Source: Pristiophorus japonicus (lineage: Eukaryota). Taken from it: a stretch of 64,000 nt of DNA. The stretch covers positions 2,418,001 through 2,482,000 of the forward strand of contig NC_092008.1 in the NCBI RefSeq assembly GCF_044704955.1, read 5' to 3'. Under the pieces are notes generated by a model. That model did no database searches and was not told the DNA's origin. It was given only the letters and a program-made list of their open reading frames with translations. Shown here in pieces: positions 17,301 to 59,510 of the stretch; position 1 is the first letter of the stretch; the number at the start of each line of letters is the position of its first letter. Position numbers and translations under genes: made by a program.

Positions 17301-20300
17301 CCCAGGACACCGGGGAGAACTCCCCCCGCTCTTCTTCCAATAGTGGCCCCGGGATCTTTTACATCCACCCGAGAGGGCAGACGGGGCCTCGGTTTAATGT
17401 CTCATCCCGAAATACAGCCCCTCCGACAGTGCGGCACTCCCTCAGTACCGCCCCTCCGACAGTGCGGCGCTCCCTCAGTACCGCCCCTCCAACAGTGCGG
17501 TGCTCCCTCAGTACCGCCCCTCCGACAGTGCGGGGCTCCCTCAGTACGGCCCCTCCGACATAGAAAATAGGTGCGGGAGTAGGATATTCGGCCCTTCGAG
17601 CCTGCACCACCATTCAATATGATCATGGCTGATCATTCCCTCAGTACCCCATTCCTGCTTTCTCTCCATACCCCTTGATCCCTTTAGTCGTAAGGGCCAC
17701 ATCTAACTCCCTTTTGAATATATCTAACGAACTGGCCCCAACAACTCTCTGTGGTAGAGAATTCCACAGGTTCACAATTCTCTGGGTAAAGAAGTTTCTC
17801 CTCATCTCGGTCCTAAATGGCTTACCCCTTATCCTTAGACTGTGACCCCTGGTTCTGGACTTCCCCAACATCGGGAACATTCTTCCTGCATCTAACCTGT
17901 CCAGTCCCGTCAGAATTTCATATGTTTTATTGAGATCCCCTCTCATCCTTCTAAACTCCAATGAATATAAGCCCAGTCGATCCAGTCTTTCTTCATATGT
18001 CAGTCCTGCCATCCCGGGAATCAGTCTGGTGAACCTTCGCTGCACTCCCTCAATAGCAAGAACGTCCTTCCTCAGATTAGGAGACCAAAACTGACAGCGC
18101 AGTGTGGCGCTCCCTCAGTACCGCCCCTCCGACAGTGCGGCGCTCCCTCAGTACTGCCCCTCCGACAGTGCGGCGCTCCTTCAGTACTGCCTCTCCGACA
18201 GTGCGGCACTCCCTCAGTACCGCCCCTCCGACAGTGCGGCGCTCCCTCAGTACCGCCCCTCCGACAGTGTGGCGCTCCCTCAGTACCGCCCCTCCGACAG
18301 TGCGGCGCTCCCTCAGTACCGCCCCTCCGACAGTGCGGCGCTCCCTCAGTACCGCCCCTCCGACAGTGCAGCACTCCCTCAGTACCGCCCCTCCGACAGT
18401 GCGGCGCTCCCTCAGTACCGCCCCTCCGACAGTGCGGCGCTCCCTCAGTACCGCCCCTCCGACAGCGCGGCGCTCCCTCAGTACCGCCCCTCCGACAGCG
18501 CGGGGCTCCCTCAGTACCGCCCCTCCGACAGTGCGGCGCTCCCTCAGTACCGCCCCTCCGACAGTGCGGCGCTCCCTCAGTACCGCCCCTCCGACAGTGC
18601 GGCGCTCCCTCAGTACCGCCCCTCCGACAGTGCGGCGCTCCCTCAGTACCGCCCCTCCGACAGTGTGGCGCTCCCTCAGTACCGCCCCTCCGACAGTGCG
18701 GCGCTCCCTCAGTACCGCCCCTCCGACAGTGCCACGCTCCCTCAGTACCGCCCCTCCGACAGTCCCTCAGTACCGCCCCTCCGACAGTGCGGCGCTCCCT
18801 CAGTACCGCCCCTCCGACAGTGCGGCGCTCCCTCAGTACCACCCATCCGACTGTGCGGCGCTCCCTCAGTACCGCCCCTCCGACAGTGCGGCGCTCCCTC
18901 AGTACTGCCCCTCCGACAGTGCGGCGCTCCCTCAGTACTGCCTCTCCGACAGTGCGGCGCTCCCTCAGTACTGCCCCTCCGACAGTGCAGCGCTCCCTCA
19001 GTACCGCCCCTCCGACAGTGCGGCGCTCCCTCAGTACTGCCCCTCCGACAGTGCGGCGCTCCCTCAGTACTGCCCCTCCGACAGTGCGGCGCTCCCTCAG
19101 TACCGCCCCTCCGACAGTGCGGCGCTCCCTCAGTACTGCCCCTCCGACAGTGCAGCGCTCCCTCAGTACCGCCCCTCCGACAGTGCGGCGCTCCCTCAGT
19201 ACTGCCCCTCCGACAGTGCGGGGCTCCCTCAGTACCGCCCCTCCGACAGTGCGGCGCTCCCTCAGTACATCCCCTCCAACAGTGCGGCGCTCCCACAGCC
19301 CTGCACTGGAGTGTCAGCCTAGATTTTTGTGCTCAATGCCTGGAGTGGGACTCGAAGCCACAACGTTCTGACTCAGGAGCGAGAGCGCTGCCCCACTGAG
19401 TCACAGCGGACACGAAGAGAGGACTCGCTGCAAAATTAACCAGAACATAAATCATTCCCTTTACATTGCACAACCCAAATAAAGTTATGTCGCAAAATGA
19501 TATATACATATCAATCACTCTCACCTACTTCCTTCGCATAGCGCCAGCACAGCTTGTACACCAGTTTTCTCTGGCAGGGCAGTGCGAAGCGTTACTGATG
19601 CAGCACAAAACCAAATGTCGTATCCTCATCGATACCCCGGTGCTACACTCCCAGGGGGATGGGAACACAAGAAATAGGAGCAGGAGGAGGCCGTTCAGCC
19701 CCTCGAGCCTGTTACATTAGGGACAGGAGGAGGCCGTTCAGCCCCTCGAGCCTGTTACATTAGGGACAGGAGGAGGCCGTTCAGCCCCTCGAGTCTGTTA
19801 CATTAGGGACAGGAGGGGGCCGTTCAGCCCCTCGAGCCTGTTACATTAGGGACAGGAGGAGGCCGTTCAGCCCCTCGAGCCTGTTACATTAGGGACAGGA
19901 GGAGGCCGTTCAGCCCCTCGAGCCTGTTACATTAGGAACAGGAGGAGGCCGTTCAGCCCCTCGAGCCTGTTACATTAGGGACAGGAGGAGGCCGTTCAGC
20001 CCCTCGAGCCTGTTACATTAGGGACAGGAGGAGGCCGTTCAGCCCCTCGAGCCTGTTACATTAGGGACAGGAGGAGGCCTTTCATCCCCTCGAGCCTGTT
20101 ACATTAGGAACAGGAGGAGGCCGTTCAGTCCCTCGAGCCTGTTCCATTAGGGACAGGAGGAGGCCGTTCAGTCCCTCGAGCCTGTTACATTAGGGACAGG
20201 AGGAGGTCATTCGGCACGGGGTTAGATACAGAGTAAAGCTCCCTCTACACTGTCCCATCAAACACTCCCAGGGCAGGTACAGCACGGGGTTAGATACAGA

Positions 20301-23300
20301 GTAAAGCTCCCTCTACACTGTCCCATCAAACACTCCCAGGGCAGGTACAGCACAGGGTTAGATACAGAGTAAAGCTCCCTCTACACTGTCCCATCAAACA
20401 CTCCCAGGGCAGGTACAGCACGGGGTTAGATACAGAGTAAAGCTCCCTCTACACTGTCCCATCAAACACTCCCAGGGCAGGTACAGCACAGGGTTAGATA
20501 CAGAGTAAAGCTCCCTCTACACTGTCCCATCAAACACTCCCAGGGCAGGTACAGCACGGGGTTAGATACAGAGTAAAGCTCCCTCTACGCTGTCCCATCA
20601 AACACTCCCAGGGCAGGTACAGGGGGTTAGATACAGAGTAAAGTTCCCTCTACACTGTCCCATCAAACACTCCCAGGGCAGGTACAGGGGGTTAGATACA
20701 GAGTAAAGCTCCTTCTACACTGTCCCATCAAACACTCCCAGGACAGGTACAGGGGGTTAGATACAGAGTAAAGCTCCCTCTACACTGTCCCATCAAACAC
20801 TCCCAGGGCAGGTACAGGGGGTTAGATACAGAGTAAAGTTCCCTGTACATGGCCCACGGTATAACCTGCTGTCTGTCCTTGTCTGTTTTCACAGCTCCCA
20901 TGTCCATCAACACCTTTGTTCGGACGGAAGGCGGGCGGGATTATTTGGTGTGCTTGGCGACGAACTTCTTTCCCCGTGAGATTGACCTGAGATGGGTCAG
21001 AGACGGGGGAGGGGCTGTCCAGGGAGCAGACAGGACTCGGGTGGTACCTCAAAGGGATGGGACCTTTCAGGCCTGGAGTGTCCTGCCCTTGGCCGGAGGT
21101 GCTGACCGTTCGACCTCCTGTCAAGTGGAACACGCGGCCATCAACGGCAAACTCGTGGTGCAACTCGGTAAGTTCAGCAACTCGGGGAAGCTCAGACACA
21201 GAGGTCGCCGTAAGACCCAACCGTGATATCTCTAACACCCCAAACACACAACACACGCTGTAAATGGCCCCGAGCAGAACTGTATCACATGACCTTGACA
21301 CATGACCTTTTATTGTCACTGCATCAGTAGTAGTTATTACATCAGAAGTCCATTACACTTTCTCCCTCCTTATTGAAGAAGTAATCATCACAGAGGATGT
21401 AACGAACAGGATGGATAAAGGGGAACCAGTGGATGTGGTATATTTGGATTTCCAGAAGGCATTTGACAAGGTGCCACATAAAAGGTTACTGCACAAGATA
21501 AAAGTTCACGAGGTTGGGGGTAATATATTAGCATGGATAGAGGATTGGCTAACTAACAGAAAACAGAGAGTCGGGATAAATGGGTCATTCTCTGGTTGGC
21601 AACCAGTAACTAGTGGGGTGCCACAGGGATCAGTGCTGGGTCCCCAACTATTTACAATCTATATTAACGACTTGGAAGAAGGGACTGAGTGTAACGTGGC
21701 CAAGTTTGCTGACGATACAAAGATGGGAGGAAAAGCAATGTGTGAGGAGGACACAAAAAATCTGCAAAAGGACACAGACAGGCTCAGTGAGTGGGCAAAA
21801 CATTTGGCAGATGGAGCATAATGTGGGAAAGTGTGAGGTCGTTCACTTTGGCAGAAAAAAAAATCAAAGAGCAAGTTATTATTTAAATGGAGAAAGAGTG
21901 CAAAGTGCCGCAGTACAGCGGGACCTGGGGGTTACTTGTACATGGAACACAAAAGGATAGTATGCAGGTACAGCAAGTGATCAGGAAGGGCCAATGGTAT
22001 CTTGGCCTTTATTGCAAAGGGGATGGAGTATAAAAGCAGGGAAGTCTTGCTCCAGTTATACATTGAATGGCGGTGCAGGCTCGAGGGGCCGAATGGCCTA
22101 CTGATCCTATTCCCGGACACCACCCGGTTCGGGTTCCCATCAGCGGGGAACTTCGGCGATACTGTTCTTGCGGTGAACAGCTGGCCCAGTAACTGTGCTC
22201 TCTTCAGATCGGAACAGGAATGCTGAGAATGAAACTTTGATCACCATCGGAGCTGTGCTGGGGATACTGGGACTGAGCGCTGCTGTGGTGACCACGATCG
22301 TGTATCACTGCGCCATCAACCGTAAGCACCTTGCGCCCGTTACCAACGATCGTTAATGTCGCGGGTTTAATTGGGGGTCTGATGCGATGGCGCCTTTCGT
22401 GCTGACTTTAGGGGAGAGCACAAATGTGTTTCCACTCACTGCCTGTGTTTCTGGTGCGTGTAAAAATGGGGCTTTTAGTATGTCGAGGGGGAGTGTTCTT
22501 TTACTGTTGGTTCCCGGGGCTGGGGGCGTCACTGGCAAGGCCGGCATTTATTGCCCGTCCGCTAATCGCCCGCGAGAAGGTGGCGCTGACCCTTATACAA
22601 CTGAGGGGCTCGCTGGGCCAGGTCAGAGGGCAGTTACAAGTCACGCACACAGTGCTGTGGGCCTGGACTCGCATAGCGGCCAGACCGGGTAAGGGCGGTA
22701 GATTTCCTTCCCTGAAGGACACATTACTGAACCCGATGGGTTTTAACGGCAAGTTCCGTTACCGTCAGAGCTGTTCAATTGAGTTCAAACTCCCCAGCCG
22801 CCCTGAACTGGTGTCCCTGGATCGTTAGTCCAGGGCTCAGAATTCCTGGCCCAGTAATATACCCACCGTCATCATCGGCAGTCCCTCGGGATCGAGGAAG
22901 ACTTGTTTCCACTCCTAACACGAGTCCTTAGGTGGCTGAACAGTCCAATACGGGAGCCACAGTCCCTGTCACAGGTGGGACAGACAGTGGTTGAGGGAAG
23001 GGGAGGGTGGGACTGGTTTGCCGCACGCTCCTTCCACTGCCTGCGCTTGGTTTCTGCACGCTCTCGGCGACGAGACTCGAGGTGCTCAGCGCCCTCCCGG
23101 ATGCACTTCCCTCCACTGAGGGCGGGACTGGTCTTTGGGCCCAGGGACTCCCAGGTGTCGTTGGGGATGTTGCACTTTATCAGGGAGGCTTTGAGAGTGG
23201 TCCCTGTAACGTTTCCTCTGCCCACCTTTGGCTCGTTTGCCCGTGAAGGAGTTCCGAGTAGAGCGCTTGCTTTGGGAGTCTCGTGTCTGGGGGACATGCG

Positions 23301-33857: not shown

Positions 33858-33939
33858 ATGAAGCTCGGTCCCATTGCCCCCAGCTGTATCTACACCTTCA
33901 TCCTCCTCACCCGCCCCGCGGGGCTTGGCTCAGCCATGC
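33858..33939 (+). CDS. WA-like leader exon copy 1 ([27 protein letters not shown])
   Basis: ATG at 33858, 82 nt (phase 1), donor gtgagt. Confidence 0.75.
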
Positions 33940-36900: not shown

Positions 36901-39900
36901 NNNNNNNNNNNNNNNNNNNNNNNNNNNNNNNNNNNNNNNNNNNNNNNNNNNNNNNNNNNNNNAATTGTGTTCTGACACCAGGGTTGTGTTCCCTCCTGTT
37001 ACAATCAGTGCGAGGAGGAAGTCGGGAGGAGGGTGAAGCGATGAAGCTCGGTCCCATTGCCCCCAGCTGTATCTACACCTTCATCCTCCTCACCCGCCCC
37101 GCGGGGCTTGGCTCAGCCATGCGTGAGTGTCCTCCCCGGCCACTCCTCATCTCGAGGGAGCGCCGCACTGCGCTGTCGGAGGGGCGGTAGTGAGGGAGCC
37201 CCGCACCGCACTGTCGGAGGGGCGGTACTGAGGGAGCGCCGCACTGTCGGAGGGGCGGTACTGAGGGAGCGCCGCACTGTCGGAGGGGCGGTAGTGAGGG
37301 AGCCCCGCACCGCACTGTCGGAGGGGCAGTACTGAGGGAGCGCCGCACTGTCGGAGGGGCAGTACTGAGGGAGCCCCGCACTGTCGGAGGGGAGGTACTG
37401 AGGGAGCCCTGCACTGTCGGAGGGACAGTACTGAGGGAGCCCCGCACTGTCGGAGGGGCGATAGTGAGGGAGCCCCGCACTGTCGGAGGGGCGATAGTGA
37501 GGGAGCCCCGCACTGTCGGAGGGACAGTACTGAGGGAGCCCCGCACTGTCGGAGGGGCGATAGTGAGGAAGTGCCGCACTGTCGGAGGGGCAGTACTGAG
37601 GGAGCCCCGCACTGTCGGAGGGGCGGTAGTGAGGGAGTGCCGCACTGTCGGAGGGGCAGTACTGAGGGAGCCCCGCACTGTCGGAGGGGCAGTACTGAGG
37701 GAGCCCCGCACTGTCGGAGGGGCGGTACTGAGGGAGTGCTGCACTGTCGGAGGGGCAGTACTGAGGGAGTGCCGCACTGTCGGAGGGGATGTACTGAGGG
37801 AGTGCCGTACTGTCGGAGAGGCAGTACTGAGGGAGTGCTGCACTGTCGGAGGGGATGTACTGAGGGAGTGCCGCACTGTTGGAGTGGCAGTACTGAGGGA
37901 GCGCTGCACTGTCGGAGGGGCGGTACTGAGGGAGTGCTGCACTGTCGGAGGGGATGTACTGAGGGAGTGCCGCACTGTTGGAGGGGCAGTACTGAGGGAG
38001 CGCTGCACTGTCGGAGGGGCGGTACTGAGGGAGTGCTGCACTGTCGGAGGGGATGTACTGAGGGAATGCCGCACTGTCGGAGGGGCAGTACTAAGGGAGT
38101 GCCGCACTGTCGGAGGGGCAGTACTGAGGGAGTGCCGCACTGTCGGAGGGGCAGTACTGAGGGAGCGCTGCACTGTCGGAGGGGCGGTACTGAGGGAGTG
38201 CCGCACTGTCGGAGGGGCAGTACTGAGGGAGCCCCGCACTGTCGGAGGGGCGGTACTGAGGGAGTGGTGCACTGTCGGAGGGGCAGTACTGAGGGAGTGC
38301 CGCACTGTCGGAGGGGATGTACTGAGGGAGTGCCGTACTGTCGGAGAGGCAGTACTGAGGGAGTGCTGCACTGTCGGAGGGGATGTACTGAGGGAGTGCC
38401 GCACTGTTGGAGTGGCAGTACTGAGGGAGCCCCGCACTGTCGGAGGGGCGGTACTGAGGGAGCCCCGCACTGTCGGAGGGGCGATAGTGAGGGAGCCCCG
38501 CACTGTCGGAGGGACAGTACTGAGGGAGCCCCGCACTGTCGGAGGGGCGATAGTGAGGGAGTGCCGCACTGTCGGAGGGGCAGTACTGAGGGAGCCCCGC
38601 ACTGTCGGAGGGGCGGTAGTGAGGGAGTGCCGCACTGTCGGAGGGGCAGTACTGAGGGAGCCCCGCACTGTCGGAGGGGCAGTACTGAGGGAGCCCCGCA
38701 CTGTCGGAGGGGCGGTACTGAGGGAGTGCTGCACTGTCGGAGGGGATGTACTGAGGGAGTGCCGTACTGTCGGAGAGGCAGTACTGAGGGAGTGCTGCAC
38801 TGTCGGAGGGGATGTACTGAGGGAGTGCCGCACTGTTGGAGTGGCAGTACTGAGGGAGCGCTGCACTGTCGGAGGGGCGGTACTGAGGGAGTGCTGCACT
38901 GTCGGAGGGGATGTACTGAGGGAGTGCCGCACTGTTGGAGGGGCAGTACTGAGGGAGCGCTGCACTGTCGGAGGGGCGGTACTGAGGGAGTGCTGCACTG
39001 TCGGAGGGGATGTACTGAGGGAGTGCCGCACTGTCGGAGGGGCAGTACTAAGGGAGTGCCGCACTGTCGGAGGGGCAGTACTGAGGGAGTGCCGCACTGT
39101 CGGAGGGGCAGTACTGAGGGAGCGCTGCACTGTCGGAGGGGCGGTACTGAGGGAGTGCCGCACTGTCGGAGGGGCGGTACTGAGGGAGCCCCGCACTGTC
39201 GGAGGGGCGGTACTGAGGGAGTGGTGCACTGTCGGAGGGGCAGTACTGAGGGAGTGCCGCACTGTCGGAGGGGATGTACTGAGGGAGTGCCGTACTGTCG
39301 GAGAGGCAGTACTGAGGGAGTGCTGCACTGTCGGAGGGGATGTACTGAGGGAGTGCCGCACTGTTGGAGTGGCAGTACTGAGGGAGCGCTGCACTGTCGG
39401 AGGGGCGGTACTGAGGGAGTGCTGCACTGTCGGAGGGGATGTACTGAGGGAGTGCTGCACTGTTGGAGGGGCAGTACTGAGGGAGCGCTGCACTGTCGGA
39501 GGGGCGGTACTGAGGGAGTGCCGCACTGTCGGAGGGGCAGTACTGAGGGAGTGCCGCACTGTCGGAGGGGCAGTACTGAGGGAGGTCCGCACTGTTGGAG
39601 GGGCGGTACTGAGGGAGTGCCGCACTGTTGGAGGGGCGGTACTGAGGGAGTGCCGCACTGTCGGAGGGGCGGTACTGAGGGAGTGCCGCACTGTCGGAGG
39701 GGCAGTACTGAGGGAGTGCCGCACTGTTGGAGGGGCAGTACTGAGGGAGCGCCGCACTGTCGGAGGGGCAGTACTGAAGGAGCGCCGCACTGTCGGAGGG
39801 GCAGTACTGAGGGAGCCCCGCACTGTCGGAGGGGCAGTACTGAGGGAGTGCCGCACTGTCGGAGGGGCAGTACTGAGGGAGTGCCGCACTGTCGGAGGGG

Positions 39901-42900
39901 CAGTACTGAGGGAGCGCTGCACTGTCGGAGGGGCAGTACTGAGGGAGTGCCGCACTGTCGGAGGGGCAGTACTGAGGGAGCGCTGCACTGTCGGAGGGGC
40001 AGTACTGAGGGAGATTGTATTAATCCCACAACCAGCGCCAGTAACAACAGGTGACCTGCTGTGGTCACTTCTCTTTGTAGCCCCTGTTCCAGTTGATGGG
40101 AAGATCCTGGTGACCCTGTACTTCACGGATGACCCAAGCCTCCCGGCGATCGTGGTACAGGCCCAGACAGCAGACCGACTTGTCCTGCACTACGACAGCA
40201 CGATGACGAGCGTCCAGTTATTGGTCAGCGGCCTGGAGCCCTACCACAGCCTCCTGGACGAGCTCTTGCAGAAGAACGAAGACAATACCGTCAAACTGCA
40301 ACGCAGCCTAATGCGTGACCTCACCGCGCTGACCAACGACTCGCGTCCCCACAACGGTCAGTCCTGGTCGGGGGCGGGGTGGGGGGAGGGAGGGGGGGTT
40401 GCTGTCATATCTTAACAACATAGCTTTTAGCCTGTGACAGCGCAGTGAGTCGCTCCCTCAGTACTGCCCCTCCGACAGTGCGGCACTCCCTCAGTACCGC
40501 CCCTCCGACAGTGCGGCACTCCCTCAGTACCGCCCCTCCGGCAGTGCGGCACTCCCTCAGTACCGCCCCTCCGACAGTGCGGCACTCCCTCAGTACCGCC
40601 CCTCCGACAGTGCGGCACTCCCTCAGTACAGCCCCTCCGGCAGTGCGGCACTCCCTCAGTACCGCCCCTGCGACAGTGCGGCACTCCCTCAGTACTGCCC
40701 CTCCGACAGTGCGGCACTCCCTCAGTACCGCCCCTCCGGCAGTGCGGCACTCCCTCAGTACCGCCCCTCCGGCAGTGCGGCACTCCCTCAGTACCGCCCC
40801 TCCGACAGTGCGGCACTCCCTCAGTACCGCCCCTCCGACAGTGCGGGGCTCCCTCAGTACTGCCCCTGCGACAGTGCGGCACTCCCTCAGTACTGCCCTT
40901 CCGACAGTGCGGCGCTCCATCAGTACTGCCCCTCCGACAGTGCGGCGCTCCCTCAGTACTGCTCCTCCGACAGTGCGGCACTCCCTCAGTACTGCCCCTC
41001 CGACAGTGCGGCGCTCCCTTAGTACTGCCCCTCCGACAGTGCGGCGCTCCATCAGTACTGCACCTCCGACAGTGCGGCGCTCCCTCAGTACCGCCCCTCC
41101 GACAGTACGGTGCTTCCTCAGTACCGCCCCTCCGACAGTGCGGGGCTCCCTCAGTACTGTCCCTCCGACAGTGCGGCGCTCCCTCAGTACCGCCCCTCCG
41201 ACAGTGCGGCGCTCCCTCAGTACCGCCCCTCCGACAGTGCGGTGCTCCCTCAGTACCGCCCCTCCGACAGTGCGGGGCTCCCTCAGTACCGCCCCTCCGA
41301 CAGTGCGGGGCTCCCTCAGTACCGCCCCTCCGACAGTGCGGGGCTCCCTCAGTACCGCCCCTCCGACAGTGCGGGGCTCCCTCAGTACTGCCCCTCCGAC
41401 AGTGCTGCGCTCCCTCAGTACCGCCCCTCCGACACTGCGGCGCTCCCTCAGTACCGCCCCTCCGACAGTGCGGGGCTCCCTCAGTACCGCCCCTCCGTCA
41501 GTGCGGCACTCCCTCAGTACCGCCCCTCCGACACTGCGTCGCTCCCTCAGTACCGCCTCTCCGACAGTACGGCACTCCCTCAGTACTGCCCCTCCGACAG
41601 CGCAGTCAGTCTCTGAAACTCAGCCCGACTGGACTCCCAGTGTGCCCCAGCGATGGGCCGCTGGGTGGACCGAGGCGAGACCTCCTTCCTGGGGCCCTAT
41701 CTACCTCCTCAGGCCGACATTAAAGACCGCGTCGGCACTGTTGGTGGAAGAGAGGGCACCTCTGCTCAACCGTCACCTGAACAACCCCAAAAGACATCGC
41801 CTGTGTGTTGTGGAATGTTGCCGGTTGACATTGTCCCGTACATAACCACAAAGACTGCGCTGGACCAGGCTGCTGCTGGGACTGGAGAATCTTAGCTATG
41901 AGGAAAGGTTGGAGAGGCTGGGTTTGTTTTCTTTGGAACAGAGGAGGCTGAGGGGAGACTTTATTGAGGTGTATAAAATTATCAGGAGCCTGGATAGTCA
42001 TTATCCCTCATCGGCAGTCCCTCGGGATCGAGGAAGACTTGCTTCCACTCTTAACACGACTCCTTCGGTGGCTGAACAGCCCAATATGGGAGCCACAGTC
42101 CCTGTCACAGGGGGGACAGACAGTGGTTGATGGAAGGGGAGGGTGGGACTGGTTTGCCGCACGCTCCTTCCGCTGCCTGCGCTTGGTTTCTGCACGCTCT
42201 CGGCGACGAGACTCGAGGTGCTCAGCGCCCTCCCGGATGCACTTCCTCCACTTAGGGCGGGACTGGTCTTTGGGCCCAGGGACTCCCAGGTGTCGGTGGG
42301 GATGTTGCACTTTATCAGGGAGGCTTTGAGGGTGGTCCCTTGTAACATTTCCTCTGCCCACCTTTGGCTCGTTTGCCCGTGAAGGAGTTCCTAGTAGAGC
42401 GCTTGCTTTGGGGAGTCTCGTGTCTGGGGGACATGCGGACAATGTGGCCCTGCCCAGCGGAGCTGGTCGAGTGTGGTCAGTGCTTCGATGCTGGGGATGT
42501 TGGCCTGGTCGAGGACGCTAACGTTGGTGCGTCTGTCCTCCCGGGGGATTTGCAGGATCTTGCGGAGACAGCGTTGGTGGTATTTCTCCAGCGACTTGAG
42601 GTGTCTACTGTACATGGTCCGTGTCTCTGAGCCATACAGGAGGGCGGGTATCACTACAGCCCTGTAGACCATGAGCTTGGTGGTAGGTTTGAGGGCCTGG
42701 TCTTCGAACACTCTCTTCCTCAGGCGGCCGAAGGCTGCACTGGCGCACTGGAGGTGGTGTAGGACCTCATCGTCGAGGTCATCCCTTGTTGATAAGAGGC
42801 TCCCGAGGTATGGGAAATGGTCCACGTTGTCCAGGGCCGGGCCGTGGATCTTGATGACTGGGGGGTGGGGGGCAGTGCAGGGCTACGGACCGAGAGCTGG

Positions 42901-45900
42901 AAAGTGGGATTAGGCCGGGATGGCTCTTGGTCGGCCGGCAGACACGATGGGCCGAAATGGCCTCCGTCCATTCTGTAAATCTCTCCGCTCTTATGATGTG
43001 CGACGACCAGATCGGTGGAAGGTGAACTGGTTGGGCTTGGGTCTACTCCCCTGTTCTTCTACCCCACCCAGACTCGCGTCCCCCATGTAGTAATGAGCTC
43101 CCGGTTCTTCCCACCGAAATGTAATCTCACATTTATCTGTGTCGGGCCTCATTTGCCAGTTCCGCGCCCGTTCCGCGAGTTTATCCCCAGTGTTGGACAG
43201 CCCCCTCCTCCCCAGTTTGTCCACGAGGGTCCTGACGCTCCGGGTCCCCGAGCTCCACGTTAGCGGAGCGGACGATGCCCGTGCGTGAGTTCTTTTCACG
43301 TGAGGGTTGGCCATTGCACAACGGGCCGCCACACGGCCTTGACGGAGCGAGGTCTGGGTCCCGTGGCAAGGCGGGGGGGGGCGGTCCGAGGCGATGGGGC
43401 CACCAGGCCCCACTGTGTGAGCCTGGTGCGAGATCTTGGCCGCAAGCTGGGTAGCGTTCTTGGTGGTCCGAGGCTTGGTTGGAGAGGGGGGGGCGGGCAT
43501 TGGGAGGGTCAGTGGTCAAACGGCGCCCCCCCTCCCCCACGATCTGCGAGAGAACAGCTCCGCAGGGTCGGGCTACAAAGGAGCTGGAGGGACCGACCAC
43601 CTCAACCTGTCCTCTCCTCCCTTCTCAACCGGTGCTTGCAAGCACAATGGCCTCCGACCTTCCAAGCCGTTTGATCAAGCGCTGAAGTTGTTGGAGAGTC
43701 CGTGACGAACTATTTCACGCCCTCCTTTTCAGAGATCGGCGAGGTCCTCCTGTACACGGAGCGGGCCGCCAGCCTCGGTCAGCCCAACGTTCTGGCCTGC
43801 CTGGTCACCGGGTTTTTCCCGCCGGCGGTCAACGTGACCCTGTCCGAGAACGACCGGCCCCTCTCCGGCAGAGTCAACTCATCGCGGGTCTCCATCGGGG
43901 AGGGCTGGCGCTTCCAGGTGCTGCACTACGCCGCGATCCGGCCGGCGGCCGGAGACGTGTACTCCTGCACGGCAGTGCACGGCATCAGCAAGGAGGAGAG
44001 AGTCGCCTACTGGGGTAAGAGTTCTCAAACATCCGGGCGGGTAAATCAGCCTCAACTCCCCCCCCCCCTCCGAGGGCAGCCCGTCGATCGGGGACCGGTA
44101 GAGGGACCCTTCGCTGTGAGGCTGCTCTGTGGGACGGGTGCGTGGAGAACACAAGGGACATGATCCGATCTTGGGCTCAGCTCCACTTCCCCGCCCGCCC
44201 CTTCACTCCCTTATCGCTCAACAATCTGTCTGTCTCCGCCTTAAATATATTCAAATGACCCAGCCCCTCCACAGCTCTCTGGGGCAGAGAATTCCACAGG
44301 TTCACCAGAAGAAATTCCTCCTCAACATAGAAACATAGAAAATAGGTGCAGGAGCAGGCCATTCGGCCCTTCGAGCCTGCACCGCCATTCAATATGATCA
44401 TGGCTGAACATGCAACTTCAGTACCCCATTCCTGCTTTCTCTCCATACCCCTTGATCCCTTTAGCCGTAAGGGTCACATCTAACTCCCTTTTGAATATAT
44501 CTAACGAACTGGCCTCAACAACTTTCTGTGGTAGAGAATTCCACAGGTTCACAATTCTCTGAGTGAAGAAGTTTCTCCTCATCTCGGTCCTAAATGGCTT
44601 ACCCCTTATCCTTAGACTGTGACCCCTGGTTCTGGACTTCCCCAACATCGGGAACATTCTTCCTGCATCTAACCTGTCCAATCCCATCAGAATTTTATAT
44701 GTTTCTATGAGATCCCCTCTCATCCTTCTAAATCCCAGTGAATATAAGCCTAGTCGATCCAGTCTTTCTTCATATGTCAGTCCTGCCATCCCGGGAATCA
44801 GTCTGGTGAACCTTCGCTGCACTCCCTCAATAGCAAGAATGTCCTTCCTCAGATTAGGAGACCAAAACTGAACACAATATTCCAGGTGAGGCCTCACCAA
44901 GGCCCTGTACAACTGCAGTAAGACCTCCCTGCTCCTATACTCAAATCCTCTCGCTATGAAGGCCAACATACCATTTGCCGCCTTCACCGCCTGCTGTACC
45001 TGCATGCCAACTTTCAATGACTGATGAACCATGACACCCAGGTCTCGTTGCACCTCCCCTTTTCCTAATCTGTCACCATGGGCGGCCCCTTATTCTAAGA
45101 TCATGCCCCCGAGTTCTAGTCTCCACTCTCAGGATGGCTGGACTGACATATGAGGAGACCCTGGATCAACTGGGCCTTTATACACTGGAGTTTAGAAGGA
45201 TGAGAGGGGATCTCAGAGAAACATATAAAATTCTGATGGGACTGGACAGGTTAGATGCGGGAAGAATGTTCCCGATGTTGGGGAAGTCCAGAACCAGGGG
45301 TCACAGTCTAAGGATAAGGGTTTGGCCATTTAGGATCGAGATGAGGAGAAACTTCTTCACTCAGAGAGTTGTTGACCTGTGGAATTCCCTGCCGCAGAGA
45401 GTTGTTGAGGCCAGTTCATTGGATATATTCAAGAGGGAGTTAGATGTGGCCCTTACAGCTAAAGGGATCAAAGGTTATGGAGAGAAAGCAGGAATGGGGT
45501 AACTGAGGGAATGATCAGCCATGAGCTTATTGAATGGTGGTGCAGGCTCGAAGGGCCGAATGGCCTACTCCTGCACCTATTTTCTATGTTTCTATCAGTG
45601 GAAACATCCTCTCTGCATCCACCTTGTCGAGCTCCCTGATAATCTTCCACGTTTCGATAAGATCACCTCTCATTCTTCTGAATTCCAATGAGTAGAGGCC
45701 CAACCTCCTCAACCTTTCCTCATAAGTCAACCCCCTCATCCCCGGAATCAACCGAGTGAACCTTCTCTGAACTGCCTCCAAAGCAAAGTGTATCCTTTCG
45801 TAAATATGGAAACCAAAACTGCACGCAGTACTCCAGGTGTGGCCTCACCAATACCTTATCTAGTTGTAGCAGGACTTCCTTACTCATATACTCCAACACC

Positions 45901-46550
45901 CCCCCCCCGTCCTACAATAAAGGCCAAGTGGAAGGGGAGAGTGTAGTGTTTGCAAGCACTCGAGTAATGACTCCACGAGGTAAGGGACTGCACTTGAACT
46001 GTTGTGACCTGAGTCCATTTCTTGCTGCTCCTGAATGAGGGTACAGTAAGCCGGGCTCCCTTTTAGAATTGGTTACCTGCGGTGTGCAGGTGACCTCTGG
46101 GTCTCCACCAGTTGCACCCTCTGGTGGTACAGGTATGGTGTATACAGTGTGAAGGTACACTCATTGGCCTTATGTAACTGTACATTGAGTGTACAGGGTA
46201 TACACGTACACAACAGAGAGGGTAGCAGTGGATCAGAGCGGAGCCCGAGCAGAGTTTGGGGTGTGACTTGTTCCTCGCGGAGGGAGCTGGGGACTGGGGC
46301 CAGTCGGCCTGTGATTCTCACCGCCCTGACCGAGCCTGCCGTTTGATTTGCAGAGCCCGACGTGCAGGACGACCCGGAGGGTGGAGACCAGCAGGACCCG
46401 GGCGGGCTGGCCGTGTTGGTGTGTGGACTCGTTGTGGGGTTACTCGGGACCATGGCTGGTCTGGGCCTGTGCTTCTGTTCCAGAGTGGTGGACCGGGAGT
46501 CTCAGATGCTGCAACTTAGGCCCCAAGCCTCGTCCTCAACTTCGGCCTGA
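33858..46550 (+). CDS. MHC W-category-like alpha chain gene (WA-like): leader 33858-33939 or 37041-37122, alpha1 40081-40356, alpha2 43733-44014, TM/cyt 46354-46550
   Basis: GT-AG phase-1 introns and a continuous open frame; beta2m-like alpha2 domain with a class II alpha-type TM. Confidence 0.88.
37041..37122 (+). CDS. WA-like leader exon copy 2 (same peptide)
   Basis: Copy of 33858-33939 offset by 3183 bp. Confidence 0.78.
37155..40012. repeat. 33-bp SINE-derived minisatellite, largest array (others 26648-27352, 28659-29725, 31460-32190, 33972-35372, 40437-41605, 47449-47620, 58517-59295)
   Basis: Unit gcactgtcggaggggcggtactgagggagcgcc; source of the long spurious ORFs. Confidence 0.95.
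40081..40356 (+). CDS. WA-like alpha1 domain exon ([15 protein letters not shown]...LVLHYDS...[12 protein letters not shown])
   Basis: Acceptor ctctttgtag, donor gtcagt, 276 nt; strands then amphipathic helix, no Cys, C-terminal sequon NDS at the usual MHC alpha1 position. Confidence 0.82.
43733..44014 (+). CDS. WA-like alpha2 Ig C1 exon, beta2-microglobulin-like
   Basis: Acceptor ctccttttcag, donor gtaaga, 282 nt; [54 protein letters not shown]. Confidence 0.93.
44175..45900. mobile_element. Cluster of nested CR1 3' fragments on both strands in WA intron 3
   Basis: ORFs 44418-45053 (-), 45134-45502 (+), 45584-45781 (-). Confidence 0.85.
45942..46215 (-). mobile_element. Solo LTR with 5-bp TSD GAGAG; related LTR at ~13700-13943
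   Basis: TG...CA termini, gagag on both flanks, shared ccaccagaggg core. Confidence 0.7.
46354..46550 (+). CDS. WA-like connecting peptide/TM/cytoplasmic exon
   Basis: Acceptor gatttgcag; acidic stalk, then [15 protein letters not shown] (GxxxGxxGxxxG as in class II alpha TM); TGA at 46548; AATAAA near 47957. Confidence 0.88.
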
Positions 46551-46661: not shown

Positions 46662-47448
46662 CGAACATAAGAAATAGGAGCAGGAGTCGGCCATTCGGCC
46701 CCTCGAGCCTGCTCCGCCATTTAATACGACCATGGCTGATCCGATCATGGACTCAGCTCCACTTCCCTGCCCGCCCCCTTATCGGTTAAGAAACTGTCTA
46801 TCTCCGTCTTAAATATATTCAATGTCCCGGCTTCCACAGCTCTCTGAGGCAGCGAATTCCACAGATTTACAACCCTCTGAGAGAAGAAATTCCTCCCCAT
46901 TTCAGTTTTAAATGGGCGGCCCCTTATTCTAAGACCATGCCCCCTAGTTCTAGTCTCCCCCATCAGTGGGAACATCCTCTCTGCATCCACCTTGTCGAGC
47001 CCCCTCATAATCTTATACGTTTCGATAAGATCACCTCTCATTCTTCTGAATTCCAATGAGTAGAGGCCCAACCTACTCAACCTTTCCTCATAAGTCAACC
47101 CCCTCATCTCCGGAATCAACCGAGTGAACCTTCTCTGAACTGCCTCCAAAGCAAGTATATCCTTTCGTAAATACGGAGACCAAAACTGTACGCAGTACTC
47201 CAGGTGTGGCCTCACCAATACCCTGTATAACTGGAGCAAGACTTCCCTGCTTTTATACTCCATCCCCTTTGCAATAAAGGCCAAGATACCATTGGCCTTC
47301 CTGATCACTTGCTGAACCTGCATACTATTCTTTTGTGTTTCATGCACAAGTACCCCCAGGTCCCGCTGTACTGCGGCACTTTGCAATCTTTCTCCATTTA
47401 AATAATAACTTGCTCTTTGATTTTTTTTCTGCCAAAGTGCATGACCTC
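46662..47448 (-). mobile_element. CR1 3' fragment in the WA 3'UTR region
   Basis: ORF 46745-47386. Confidence 0.85.
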
Positions 47449-50400: not shown

Positions 50401-53400
50401 TGGACGTGCGCTCGAAGTGCTGTAACCCACAGGGCTACGGACCCAGAGCGGGAAAGTGGGATTAGGCCGGGATGGCTCTTGGTCGGCCGGCGCGAGGTGG
50501 ACACGATGGGCCGAATGGCCCCCTCCCGCGCTGTAAACTCCTGCGATTGAACTGGAGGGAGTGTTAGAAGAATAAACGAGGATGTAATTTCAAACAGAAC
50601 AAGTGACGAGACGGAAATCGAAAGGGTCTCGCGGGAAAATGCCAAACTTTATGCAGAAATGGTTCCGTTGCTTGGTAACACAGATACAATCCGATTGCAA
50701 TTACTTGGACACACATGAAAGACGGAAGTGTATGAGTTCGTTGAGTTCGTGAGCGTTTCCAGTCTGGGGGGCCGTTTGGTTAGAGAAAGGTATTGACCCA
50801 GGGCTGCTCTCCCCCCTCTCTCCCGCGACGGTCCGTGTCACGGACTCTCCGAACGATTCCCCCCCATGGTCGGTCGAGTCGGACCTCGGTCAGACGGAGC
50901 GAGAGAGAGAGAGAGAGCGAGATGGCGGAGGAGGTCCATTCGGGAGCGGCCGCCGCTTTGGGGAGTCTGACCTTTCACCTTTCGCCGGCCCCGGGAGGGC
51001 GAAAGGTGAAAGGTCAGACTCCCCGCGCTCTCCGAACGCCTCGCGGCGTTCCCTCCAACGATGTCGGCGGTCTCCGCTCCGAAACGTGGCCCCGGGGGGG
51101 GGGTCCTGAGGACAAGACGTAAGCAGCGGCCATCATACGGGTGGCACGCGTTATGTGTCGACACGTAGCAACAGTTTATAAACGCGGGATTACACGGGAT
51201 ATACGGCCCAGAAACAGGCCATTGGGCCCAACCAGTCCGTGCGGCGTTTATACCCCACTCGAGCCCCCTCCCGTCTTTCCCCATCTAAATCTATCGGCAT
51301 AACCCTCTATCCCCTTCTCCCCCGTGTGTTTATCCAGCCTCCCCTTAAATGCATCGACACTATTGGCCTCGACCCCTCCCTGTGGCAGCGAGTTCCACAT
51401 TCTCACCGCTCTCTGGGTAAAGAGGTTTCTCCTGAATTCCCCATTGGGTTTATCAGTGACTGTCTTATATCGATGGCCTCTGGTTACACCCTTCCCCACA
51501 AGTGGGAACACTCTCTCTGTATCCACTCATCAAAACCTTTCATCATTTTACAGATCTCTATTAGGTCACCCCTCAGCCTTTTTCATTCAAGAGAAAAGAG
51601 ACCCGGCCTGTTCATCCTTTCCTGATATGTATACCTCGCATTTCTGGTATCATCCTTGTAAATCTTCTCTGCACCTTCTCCAGTGCCTCTATATCCTTTT
51701 TATAATATGGTGACCAGAACTGTGCACGGTGCTCCAAGTGTGATCTAACCCAGGTATATGGAGACCAGAACTGTGCACAGTGCTCCCAGTGTGGTCTAAC
51801 ACAGGTATATGGAGATCAGAACTGTGCACGGTGCTCCAAGTGTGGTCTAACCCAGGTATATGGAGACCAGAACTGTGCACGGTGCTCCAAGTGTGGTCTA
51901 ATCCAGGTATATGGAGACCAGAACTGTGCACGGTGCTCCAAGTGTGGTCGAACCCAGGTATATGGAGACCAGAACTGTGCACGGTGCTCCAAGTGTGGTC
52001 TAATCCAGGTATATGGAGACCAGAACTGTGCACGGTGCTCCAAGTGTGGTCTAACACAGGTATATGGAGATCAGAACACCTCTCCCAATCTCATTAACCT
52101 CCTCCAGCCCCTACACCCCTCCCTATCGCTGTAACCTCCTCCAGCCCCTACACCCCTCCCTATCTCTGAAACCCCCTCCAGCCCCTACACCCCTCCCTAT
52201 CTCTGTAACCTCCTCCAGCCCGTACACACCTCCCTATCTCTGTAACCTCCTCCAGCCCCTACACCCCTCCCTATCTCTGTAACCCTCTCCAGCCCCTACA
52301 CCCCTCCCTATCTCTGTAACCTCCTCTAGCCCCTACACCACTCCCTATCTCTGAAACCACCTCCAGCCCCTACACCCCTCCCTATCTCTGTAACCTCCTC
52401 CAGCCCCTACACTCCTCCCTATCTCTGTAACCCCCTCCAGTCCCCTACACCCCTCCCTATCTCAGTAACTTCCTCCAGCCCCTACACCCCTCCCTATCTC
52501 TGTAACCTCCTCCAGCCCCTACACCCCTCCTTATCTCTGTAACCCCCTCCAGCCCCTACACCCCTCCCTATCTCTGTAACCTCCTCCAGCCCCTACACCC
52601 CTCCCTATCTCAGTAACCTCCTCCAGCCCCTACACCCCTCTCTATCGCTGTAACCTCCTCCAGCCCCTACACCCCTCCCTATCTCAGTAACCTCCTCCAG
52701 CCCCTACACTCCTCCCTATCTCTGTAACCTCCTCCAGCCCCTGCACCCCTCCCTATCTCAGTAACCACCTCCAGCCCCTACACCCCTCCCTATCTCTGTA
52801 ACCCCCTCCAGCCCCTACACCCCTCCCAATCTCAGTAACCTCCTCCAGCCCCGACACCCCTCCCTATCTCTGTAACCTCCTCCAGCCCCTACAACCCTCC
52901 CTATTTCTGAAACCTCCTCCAGCCCCTACACCCCTCCCTATCTCTGTAACCCCCTCCAGTCCCCTACACCCCTCCCTATCTCAGTAACTTCCTCCAGCCC
53001 CTACACCCCTCCCTATCTCTGTAACCTCCTCCAGCCCCTACACCCCTCCCTATCTCTGTAACCTCCTCCAGCCCCTACACCCATCCCTATTGCTGTAACC
53101 TCCTCCAGCCCCTACACTCCTCCCTATCGCTGTAACCTCCTCCAGCCCCTACACCCCTCCCTAGCTCTGTAACCTCCTCCAGCCCCTACACCCATCCCTA
53201 TCGCTGTAACCTCCTCCAGCCCCCTACACCCCTCCCTATCTCTGTTATCTCCTCCAGCCCCTACACCCCTCCCTCGCTCTTTAACCTCCTCCAGCCCTAC
53301 ACCCATCCCTATCGCTGTAAGCTCCTCCTGCCCCCTACACCTCTCCCTATCTCTGTTATCTCCTCCAGCCCCTACACCCCTCCCTATCTCTGTAACCTCC

Positions 53401-54424
53401 TCCAGCCCCTACACCCCTCCCTAGCTCTGTAACCTCCTCCAGCCCCTACACCCATCCCTATTGCTGTAACCTCCTCCAGCCCCTACACTCCTCCCTATCG
53501 CTGTAACCTCCTCCAGCCCCTACACCCCTCCCTAGCTCTGTAACCTCCTCCAGCCCCTACACCCATCCCTATCGCTGTAACCTCCTCCAGCCCCCTACAC
53601 CCCTCCCTATCTCTGTTATCTCCTCCAGCCCCTACACCCCTCCCTCGCTCTTTAACCTCCTCCAGCCCTACACCCATCCCTATCGCTGTAAGCTCCTCCT
53701 GCCCCCTACACCTCTCCCTATCTCTGTTATCTCCTCCAGCCCCTACACCCCTCCCTCGCTCTTTAACCTCCTCCAGCCCTACACCCATCCCTATCGCTGT
53801 AAGCTCCTCCTGCCCCCTACACCTCTCCCTATCTCTGTTATCTCCTCCAGCCCCTACACCCCTCCCTATCTCTGTAACCTCCTCCAGCCCCTACATCCCT
53901 CCCTATCTCTGAAACCTCCTCCAGCCCCTACACCCCTGCCTATCTCTGTAACCTCCTCCAGCCCCTACACCCCTCCCTATCTCTGTAATCTCCTCCAGCT
54001 CCTACACCCCTCCCTATCTCTGTAACCCCCTCCAGCCCCCTACATCCCTCCCTATCTCTGTAACCCCCTCCAGCCCCTACACCCCTCCCTATCTCTGTAA
54101 ACCCCTCCAGCCCCTACACCCCTTCCGATCGCTGTAACCTCCTCCAGCCCCTACACCCCTCCCTATCGCTGTAACCCCCTCCAGCCCCTACATCCCTTCC
54201 TATCTCTGTAACCTCCTCCAGCCCCTACACCCCTCCCTATCTCTATAACCCCCTCCAGCCCCTACACCCCTCCCTATCTCTGTAACCTCCTCCAGCCCCT
54301 ACACCTCTCCCTATCTCTGTAACCCTCTCCAGCCCCTATACCCCTCCCTATCTCTGTAACCTCCTCCAGCCCCTAGACCCTTCCCTATCTCTGTAATCTC
54401 CTCCAGCCCCTACACCCCTCAAAC

Positions 54425-58190: not shown

Positions 58191-59510
58191 CTGTCCGATC
58201 AAAGGTAGCTGCTCCGGCATGGAGCAGCTGGCTGATGAAGTCGAGATTTTCCCGGATGTCCTTCTCGATGTTCTGCAGGGCCTTCGGGTCCTTGTTGGTG
58301 CTGGCCACCGCGGCCTTCACGGAGGCGTGCTTCAGGACCAGCCGGCCCGTCGTGGTGTCGAACACAGTCAGCGTGTCGGCGTTGTAGGCCAGGCTCCACC
58401 CGCAACCGGTCATGTCCTTCTGGACAACGGCTGCTCGGTCACAGTCCAGGAGTTGTTGCACCACGTCTGGAGGGAGGGGGAGAGAGGGAGACAGCAGATG
58501 AGGCGATTGTACCAGCGCCTCCGACAGTGCGGGGCTCCCTCAGTACCGCCCCTCCGACAGTGCGGCGCTCCCTCAGTACCGCCCCTCCGACAGTGCGGGG
58601 CTCCCTCAGTACTGCCCCTCCGACAGTGCGGGGCTCCCTCAGTACCGCGCCTCCGACAGTGCGGCGCTCCTTCAGTACCGCCCCTCCGACAGTGCGGCAC
58701 TCCCTCAGTACCGCCCCTCCGACAGTGTGGCACTCCCTCAGTACCGCCCCTCCGACAGTGCGGGGCTCCCTCAGTACCGCCCCTCCGACAGTGCGGGGCT
58801 CCCTCAGCACCGCCCCTCCGACAGTGCGGCATTCCCTCAGTACCGCCCCTCCGACAGTGCGGCGCTCCCTCAGTACCGACCCTCCGACAGTGCGGGGCTC
58901 CCTCAGTACTGCCCCTCCGACAGTGCGGGGCTCCCTCAGTACTGCCCCTCCGACAGTGCGGCGCTCCCTCAGTACCGCCCCTCCGACAGTGCGGGGCTCC
59001 CTCAGCACTGCCCCTCCGACAGTGCGGGGCTCCCTCAGTACCGCCCCTCCGACAGTGCGGCGCTCCCTCAGTACCGCCCCTCCGACAGTGCGGCGCTCCC
59101 TCAGTACCGCCCCTCCGACAGTGCGGCGCTCCCTCAGTACCGCCCCTCCGACAGTGCGGCGCTCCCTCAGTACCGCCCCTCCGACAGTGCGGCACTCCCT
59201 CAGCCAGTGCGGCGCTCCCTCAGCACTGCCCCTCCGACAGTGCGGCGCTCCCTCAGTACCACCCCTCCGACAGTGCGGCGCTCCCTCAGCACTGCCCAGT
59301 GCCAGCGTAGACTTATACACTCAAATCCCTGGAGTGGGACTCGAACCCACAACCTCCTGACTCAGAGACGAGGGGGCTGCCCCATTGAGTCAGGGCTGTC
59401 GCCTGAGGCTATCTGGGAGTGTGTGTCGGGATTTACAATTCTCCTGGCGTGGGGCAGTAATCACCGTATGAATCGTCGGCACAAAAACAGACACCTTTAA
59501 TGCTTAAAGT

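Follow-up and report, generated by a model that had tools for sequence, protein, structure and literature searches.

In a 64,000-nucleotide stretch of the genome of the sawshark Pristiophorus japonicus (RefSeq assembly GCF_044704955.1, contig NC_092008.1, positions 2,418,001 to 2,482,000 of the forward strand; hereafter the window, numbered from its first letter), the exon at 43733-44014 very probably codes for alpha2, the domain next to the membrane, in a W-category major histocompatibility complex (MHC) alpha chain, WA, of the DS10-like lineage. The W-category was defined by Okamura, Dijkstra et al. (PNAS 2021, PMC8713811) for molecules of class II architecture in which the WA alpha2 domain clusters with beta2-microglobulin (beta2m). 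A sequence-only reading of the window had described a membrane-anchored class II-type alpha chain with an immunoglobulin (Ig) domain of beta2m type, and the gene model, the phylogenetic tree and the signature residues agree with that description.

The interval 43733-44014 (plus strand) is one exact phase-1 exon, bounded by the acceptor ccttttcag ahead of AG at 43733 and by the donor gtaag, preceded by G, after 44014. Its codons (43735-44013) specify 93 residues without a stop, and Pfam recognises the product as a C1-set Ig domain (E 9.5e-17). Among 1.8 billion representative proteins, a search identified a public one of 278 aa, P0001, with 100% identity across this exon. P0001 is UniParc entry UPI00398F492B from the genus Pristiophorus, where it is named 'HLA class II histocompatibility antigen, DQ alpha 1 chain-like'. 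The exon is the third of a gene with four exons:

37041-37122, plus strand: exon 1, ATG and a 27-residue leader, with the phase-1 donor gtgagt (tblastn, P0001 residues 1-27)
40081-40356, plus strand: exon 2, the alpha1 membrane-distal domain, 91 full codons (tblastn, P0001 residues 29-119)
43733-44014, plus strand: exon 3, the alpha2 C1-set Ig domain with Y8, L37, V55, I57 and W61 (family numbering) and a terminal W (HMMER, Pfam)
46354-46550, plus strand: exon 4, connecting peptide, transmembrane (TM) helix, cytoplasmic tail and stop codon at 46548-46550 (tblastn of P0001)

The joined coding sequence of the four exons equals P0001 in a local equality check and has no internal stop. All junctions are canonical and of phase 1, and the 278-codon frame is open. 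Exon 2, with the acceptor tttgtag and the donor gtcagt, equals P0001 over all 91 codons, and the 97.8% given by tblastn stems from two intronic codons ahead of the acceptor. The alpha1 domain is modeled as strands followed by a long helix, and the TM helix carries GxxxGxxGxxxG, the glycine spacing of class II alpha chains, with its glycines (G238, G242, G245 and G249) nearly invariant in an alignment of 15 WA chains. Two N-glycosylation sequons, NVT and NSS, are located in the alpha2 domain. An alpha1 exon ahead of the Ig domain and a class II alpha-type TM segment behind it, as anticipated from the letters, are thus present as exons 2 and 4.

Contigs from two small runs, X5 and X6, which represent other individuals and a study different from the probable one of the assembly, contain the alpha2-to-TM junction. 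The X5 contig (339 nt) consists of 43761-44014 plus 46354-46438, and the X6 contig (241 nt) of 43801-44014 plus 46354-46380, i.e. the exact splice in both cases. The colinear match stops exactly at 44013/44014 in single contigs, and the remainders were placed at 46354 onwards by the leftover letters, by bin depths and by a variant at 46385 of equal depth. The intron beside exon 3 had zero depth in X5 and X6 and was crossed by the DNA run X1. The simplest reading is that the two contigs are spliced RNA. Compared with the window, X5 exhibits 43829 T>C, giving Val32Ala in the alpha2 domain, and the synonymous 46385 A>C in the TM exon, and X6 exhibits no difference over 43801-44013. These sparse differences suggest low allelic variation at the WA locus, as reported for the W-category.

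According to PMC8713811, the WA alpha2 domain has Y8, F or L at position 37 replacing the Ig-core Trp, L55, F or Y at position 57, and the name-giving W61. In HMMER alignments of the exon 3 domain with beta2m, LLYT is paired with QVYS, which places the Tyr on Y10; VNVTLSEN is paired with IEIDLLKN, which places a Leu on beta2m L39, the position of the Ig-core Trp; VSIGEGWRF is paired with LSFSKDWSF, giving V/L54, I/F56, W/W60 and F/F62; and VAYW is paired with IVKW, with the terminal Trp on beta2m W95. The same pairing had been drawn by hand in the sequence-only reading, and every element of it is recovered: Tyr10, the core Leu, Trp60/Phe62 and Trp95 are kept, Leu54 and Phe56 are replaced by Val and Ile, and the Trp of GEGW, on whose placement the comparison hinged, aligns with W60.

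The signature columns were read in homologous domains extracted from 103 hits (19 beta2m, 19 other WA and 65 class II alpha2):

beta2m, 19 rows: Y8 in 19/19; position 37 L in 19/19; position 57 F in 19/19; W61 in 19/19
other WA, 19 rows: Y8 in 19/19; position 37 F in 10, L in 8 and I in 1; position 57 F in 13, Y in 4 and V in 2; W61 in 19/19
class II alpha2, 65 rows: Y8 in 30/65; position 37 W in 64/65; position 57 varied; W61 in 3/65

The pattern is more than coincidence. The combination of L, F or I at position 37 with W61 is present in all beta2m rows (19/19) and in all other WA rows (19/19), and in none of the class II alpha2 rows (0/65). Only L37 and W61 discriminate between the groups; Tyr8 does not, nor does the terminal Trp, which is found in 58/65 class II alpha2 domains. 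As a six-residue signature the window domain reads YLVIWW, compared with YLLFWW in beta2m and YL[LA][FY]WW in shark WA. W61 corresponds to W178 of the precursor and is invariant in the 15 aligned WA chains. The sequence-only reading would be refuted if shark class II alpha chains had these residues in common, and sharks do have many chains with 'class II alpha-like' names that carry them: the 19/19 other WA rows do, which makes the residues a family hallmark, and the view of them as a novel oddity falls away.

A first maximum-likelihood (ML) tree, made without an outgroup, could not test the sisterhood of beta2m and WA. The rooted ML tree comprised 118 rows and 93 columns (LG+C20), with the root on Ig constant domains and with class I alpha3, class II beta2 and WB beta2 domains added. 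In this tree WA was monophyletic (99/87), the 19-row beta2m clade was monophyletic (98/82) and excluded the window domain, and WA joined beta2m in a clade (99/94) adjacent to class II alpha2. The window domain was placed inside WA within a nine-row shark/ray subclade (95/94), and Ambystoma WA_01/02 belong to the same WA clade. Its terminal branch is 0.34-0.38, compared with 0.08 for Heterodontus.

The automatic name 'DQ alpha 1 chain-like' implies a conventional, possibly non-classical DM/DO-like class II alpha chain, and several features of the gene would fit such a chain. The exon structure and the TM glycine motif are of this type, the full-length model (pLDDT 72) finds its best match among class II alpha chains (HLA-DM alpha, E 2.9e-13), the class II alpha2 profile scores the domain above the beta2m profile, and the alpha2 domains of DP, DQ and DM tie structurally with beta2m. 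However, the domain is without W37 and has W61, the reverse of what nearly all class II alpha2 domains exhibit, neither tree includes it in the class II alpha2 group, and for alpha1 as well as alpha2 the matching rows in the available parts of the PMC8713811 datasets are of DS10-type WA. We consider a conventional class II alpha chain very unlikely.

A WA chain is also the closest group by overall similarity, albeit overall similarity says little about the relation to beta2m. On average the domain is 42.6% identical to WA, 32.1% to beta2m and 31.5% to class II alpha2. Scored with a profile of each group, it reaches 116.6 bits with WA, 87.5 with class II alpha2 and 74.3 with beta2m. Among all chains in the PDB, phmmer ranks beta2-microglobulins on top (E about 1e-14), followed at lower ranks by HLA-DM/H2-M alpha (9e-13) and DR alpha (1.3e-11). 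The domain model (pLDDT 95.8) has beta2m chains, including nurse shark beta2m, as all of its top 50 PDB neighbours, with Z 15.3-15.9 and a root mean square deviation of 1.1-1.7 A over 90-92 residues. The PDB matches of the sequence and structure searches included no W-category molecule. When one representative per sequence cluster was used, beta2m scored Z 15.4-14.9, DP 14.6, DQ 14.5 and DM alpha2 14.0, and the Ig constant, class I alpha3 and class II beta2 domains reached at most 13.1. The predicted fold thus ties beta2m and class II alpha2, with a Z difference below 1 that gives no ranking, and the model would place the domain structurally in the beta2m/class II alpha2 group. The domain's kinship with beta2m is thus carried by its signature residues and its place in the phylogeny; the beta2m look proposed from the letters holds for these two and does not extend to overall identity, profile score or predicted fold.

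The exon might on the other hand be taken for exon 2 of a genuine MHC-linked shark beta2m gene, with the flanking alpha1-like and TM-like exons being foreign or spurious. The top sequence matches and the 50 structural neighbours in the PDB are beta2m, the exon ends in YW directly followed by gt like beta2m exon 2, beta2m is MHC-linked in sharks (PMC8713811), and annotation pipelines name shark WA fragments 'beta-2-microglobulin-like'. In contrast, the contigs of two runs splice exon 3 directly to the TM exon, and in the public gene model it is linked in frame with alpha1 on one side and TM on the other. The domain furthermore stands in the WA clade, apart from the beta2m clade, its identity to WA is the higher by some ten points, and F57, present in 19/19 beta2m rows, is Ile here. 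A beta2m gene consequently receives hardly any credence from us. A true beta2m gene was rejected on the contigs spliced to the TM exon and on the tree position.

The assignment to the WA family is supported by the closest proteins, which are shark and ray chains with 49-59% identity, auto-named 'class II alpha-like' or 'beta-2-microglobulin-like'. The alpha2 domain is 59% identical to a Heterodontus DS10-like protein. It is 39% identical over the aligned domain, and 41% over the matched stretches in the search, to the Ambystoma 'MHC class II alpha chain WA_01/WA_02', which was deposited by the authors of the W-category paper. As far as Datasets S1-S3 of PMC8713811 are available to us, the Heterodontus protein (P0004) matches 'zebra bullhead shark WA DS10L', the N-terminal half of the sawshark alpha2 domain is close to 'spiny dogfish WA DS10 like 01', and the N-terminal part of alpha1 matches DS10-type WA rows of Dataset S1. 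This comparison of sequences identifies the nine-row shark/ray subclade as the DS10-like lineage. Pristiophorus japonicus itself has 0 occurrences in PMC8713811.

Public names are of little help in this family. In stingray, catshark, cavefish and zebrafish, 'beta-2-microglobulin(-like)' is the label that pipelines attach to WA chains or fragments (P0005, P0007, P0047, P0164/P0165), and other WA chains bear 'class II alpha-like' or even 'B-L beta chain-like' as automatic names. The mislabelling of W-category genes in public pipelines is systematic.

The sawshark chain shares with WA the architecture, W61, L37, Y8, the TM glycines, the clustering and a linked WB gene, and it lacks the pair L55 and F/Y57, having V55 and I57 instead. 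The codons of V55 and I57 are the same in X5 and X6, so that the two residues are carried by all three sampled individuals. Position 55 in the 19 other WA is occupied by L in 12, A in 3, F in 2, I in 1 and V in 1, and position 57 is aromatic in 17/19, with Val in two DS5-like chains, one of which (P0046) is from P. japonicus itself. L55 and F/Y57 are thus typical of WA and not universal, and V55 and I57 are conservative hydrophobic replacements. Within the DS10-like subclade the window domain is nevertheless the sole member without an aromatic residue at position 57. At alpha1 position 30, whose class I equivalent contacts beta2m L55, every DS10-like row carries E or Q instead of V, and the L55-V30 contact is therefore no DS10 feature anyway. 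From the two replacements it had been concluded that the interface has diverged. The replacements are real, and the conclusion was drawn from them alone; it is weakened by the variation at position 55 and by Val57 in two other WA chains.

A WB beta-chain gene of the Nds5L-like type lies about 15 kb upstream of the WA gene:

16620-22321, plus strand: WB Nds5L-like beta-chain gene
16620-16892, plus strand: WB beta1 exon, with canonical phase-1 splice sites
20895-21167, plus strand: WB beta2 exon, with W37, P57, G61 and VVPQRDGTFQ of the WB/class I alpha3 type, and with canonical phase-1 splice sites (profile scan)
22208-22321, plus strand: WB connecting peptide/TM exon, with canonical phase-1 splice sites

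P57 and G61 instead of the class II W61 are the mark of the WB beta2 domain in PMC8713811. The gene matches WB_Nds5L row by row in the available parts of Datasets S1-S3 (HLFHVQCACVY..., AFDGAT, LITIGAVLGILGLSAAVV). A leader exon of this gene was not found. No public protein was matched by the beta1 and beta2 exon frames in length-limited searches, and the gene was therefore typed only against the datasets of PMC8713811. Six-frame profile scans of the window revealed no C1-set exons besides WA alpha2 and WB beta2. One more beta1 exon is present in the window:

about 58192-58467, minus strand: lone WB_DS3-like beta1 exon with a gtaacg donor, DVVQQLLDCDRAAVVQKDMTGCGWSLAYNADTL...

No beta2 or TM exon was detected downstream of it on the minus strand, and it is possibly a truncated gene.

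Several of these observations weigh against reading the gene as a WA chain of the published kind, and they should be considered together. Identity, profile score and fold do not separate beta2m from class II alpha2. V55 and I57 stand in place of the usual L55 and F/Y57. The Nds5L-like WB gene has a tandem instead of a head-to-head arrangement with WA, and position 37 of its beta1 domain is T instead of D. Regarding expression, the run type of X5 and X6 was deduced by us, and the alpha1-alpha2 junction and the usage of exon 1 are without read support in their contigs. Finally, heterodimer formation and the packing of the Trp, outlined below, would follow from the family and from class I structures only.

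Some of the same features could be explained if the sawshark gene were a decaying or functionally released WA gene, in which V55/I57 and the missing head-to-head WB_DS1-like partner reflected relaxed constraint. The domain has other residues at two contact positions typical of the family and sits on a somewhat long terminal branch, the neighbouring WB_DS3-like gene appears truncated to one exon, and satellites and duplicated 5' ends abound in the locus. However, the 278-codon frame is open and the splice sites, both Ig cysteines, W61, Y8 and the TM glycines are all kept in it; the domain model is very confident; the spliced contigs from two individuals carry just one non-synonymous and one synonymous difference; and both replacements are conservative hydrophobics. 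Decay of the gene is in our opinion highly improbable, and an intact DS10-like WA gene is the explanation that we adopt.

Such a chain would be expected to work as other W-category chains do, in analogy with the family (Okamura et al. 2021, PMC8713811) and with class I structures. The alpha1 domain and the GxxxG TM helix of WA would bind a WB chain to form a class II-shaped heterodimer, in which alpha2 would be positioned beneath the alpha1/beta1 platform, as beta2m is beneath class I alpha1/alpha2. Trp61 (W178) may insert into the underside of the beta1 sheet and Tyr8 (Y127) may bond to Pro57 of the WB beta2 domain, with Leu37 presumably in place of the usual Ig-core Trp, as in beta2m. Experimental evidence for a WA/WB heterodimer comes only from the tiger salamander (PMC8713811). 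A complex prediction with the WA ectodomain (P0001 residues 28-215) and WB beta1/beta2 as separate chains gave 0.73, compared with 0.67 for one unrelated control. The sawshark WA molecule is probably non-classical.

In great white shark DS10L is head-to-head with DS1L (PMC8713811), whereas in sawshark the WB gene near WA is a tandem Nds5L-like gene. Taken together, the lack of an aromatic residue at position 57, Val55, the tandem WB_Nds5L-like gene, whose beta1 has Thr in place of an acidic residue at the site that in class I forms a hydrogen bond to the Trp, and the missing head-to-head WB_DS1-like gene would be compatible with a beta2m-type underside contact that is remodelled in the sawshark DS10-like WA, with Trp61 kept and the genomic partner changed, i.e. 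a co-adapted interface change or partner switching. We regard this as unlikely.

The 5' end of the WA gene is present twice:

33858-33939, plus strand: second copy of exon 1 (tblastn, identical leader peptide)

The two ends (33858-33939 versus 37041-37122) form a tandem duplication with a period of about 3183 bp (~3.18 kb), and are identical at 404/425 positions downstream of the N runs and at 892/900 upstream. A 43-bp satellite and an N run of exactly 455 letters lie ahead of exon 1 in both copies, and a 33-bp minisatellite comes after it. Arrays of the 33-bp minisatellite flank the alpha1 exon in opposite orientations (37173-40013 and 40443-41600), with 86 copies in intron 1 and 35 reverse-complemented copies in intron 2, and their consensus units agree at 31/33 positions. 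Judged from their letters, the two arrays could pair in the pre-mRNA and loop out the alpha1 exon, which would result in exon skipping or a circular RNA.

Repeats are common elsewhere in the window. Tail fragments of long interspersed nuclear elements (LINEs), extremely abundant in the genome, are found in intron 3 (44100-45900) and at 17644-18114 and 46745-47386, and their summed contig depth is 1e5 to 1e7 in every run, compared with about 3-24 on exons. A LINE open reading frame (ORF) at 14698-16491 is directly upstream of the WB gene. Further upstream, at about 3283-11691 on the plus strand, long ORFs resemble gag-pol of a long terminal repeat (LTR) retrotransposon when read by eye (CCHC zinc knuckle, DTGAS protease motif and integrase-like end), and are interrupted by a LINE ORF at 7114-10119. 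Tandem repeats of 254 and 276 bp and a 37-bp satellite at 52076-54420 follow the DS3-like exon.

Compared with the known systems, the sawshark gene is nearest to the WA DS10-like lineage of PMC8713811. It shares with that lineage the four-part class II alpha architecture and exons, Y8, L37, W61, the TM motif, the clustering of alpha2 with beta2m and the presence of WB genes nearby, and it differs by V55/I57 and by the duplicated 5' exon. With beta2m the domain shares the C1-set fold, Y10, L39/40 for the core Trp, W60, F62, W95 and a phase-1 exon ending in W. The two belong to sister clades (WA and beta2m) with an identity of about 32%. Whereas beta2m is a free single soluble domain, the sawshark domain sits between alpha1 and the TM/cytoplasmic exons, has L54/F56 changed to V/I, a C'-D loop two residues longer and two N-glycosylation sequons. 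The class II alpha chains DR, DQ, DP and DM have in common with it the gene structure, the whole-chain fold (Foldseek E about 1e-12 to 1e-13), the TM glycines and the terminal Trp, and their alpha2 domains match at Z 14.0-14.6, tied with beta2m. They differ from it by W37 in 64/65 and by the lack of a conserved Trp61 or aromatic residue at position 57, in contrast to L37 and W61 in sawshark.

The resemblance to beta2m is real, but it is a published hallmark of the WA family since 2021, and the sawshark gene adds a member and not a novel type of molecule. The current picture of MHC evolution is unchanged by it, as the beta2m-like alpha2 domain was the central result published in 2021. The public names are a pitfall for annotation, since pipelines call WA chains 'class II DQ/DP alpha-like' or 'beta-2-microglobulin-like'. 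The W-category is a proposed intermediate of MHC class II and class I, and intact, expressed shark members are useful for comparison. The locus adds a squalomorph (sawshark) DS10-like WA with a defined gene structure and splice evidence, and it provides a contact surface of beta2m type in which V55/I57 is a naturally occurring variant, together with a WB arrangement unlike that of great white shark; its interest is limited to this variant and to the unusual gene arrangement.

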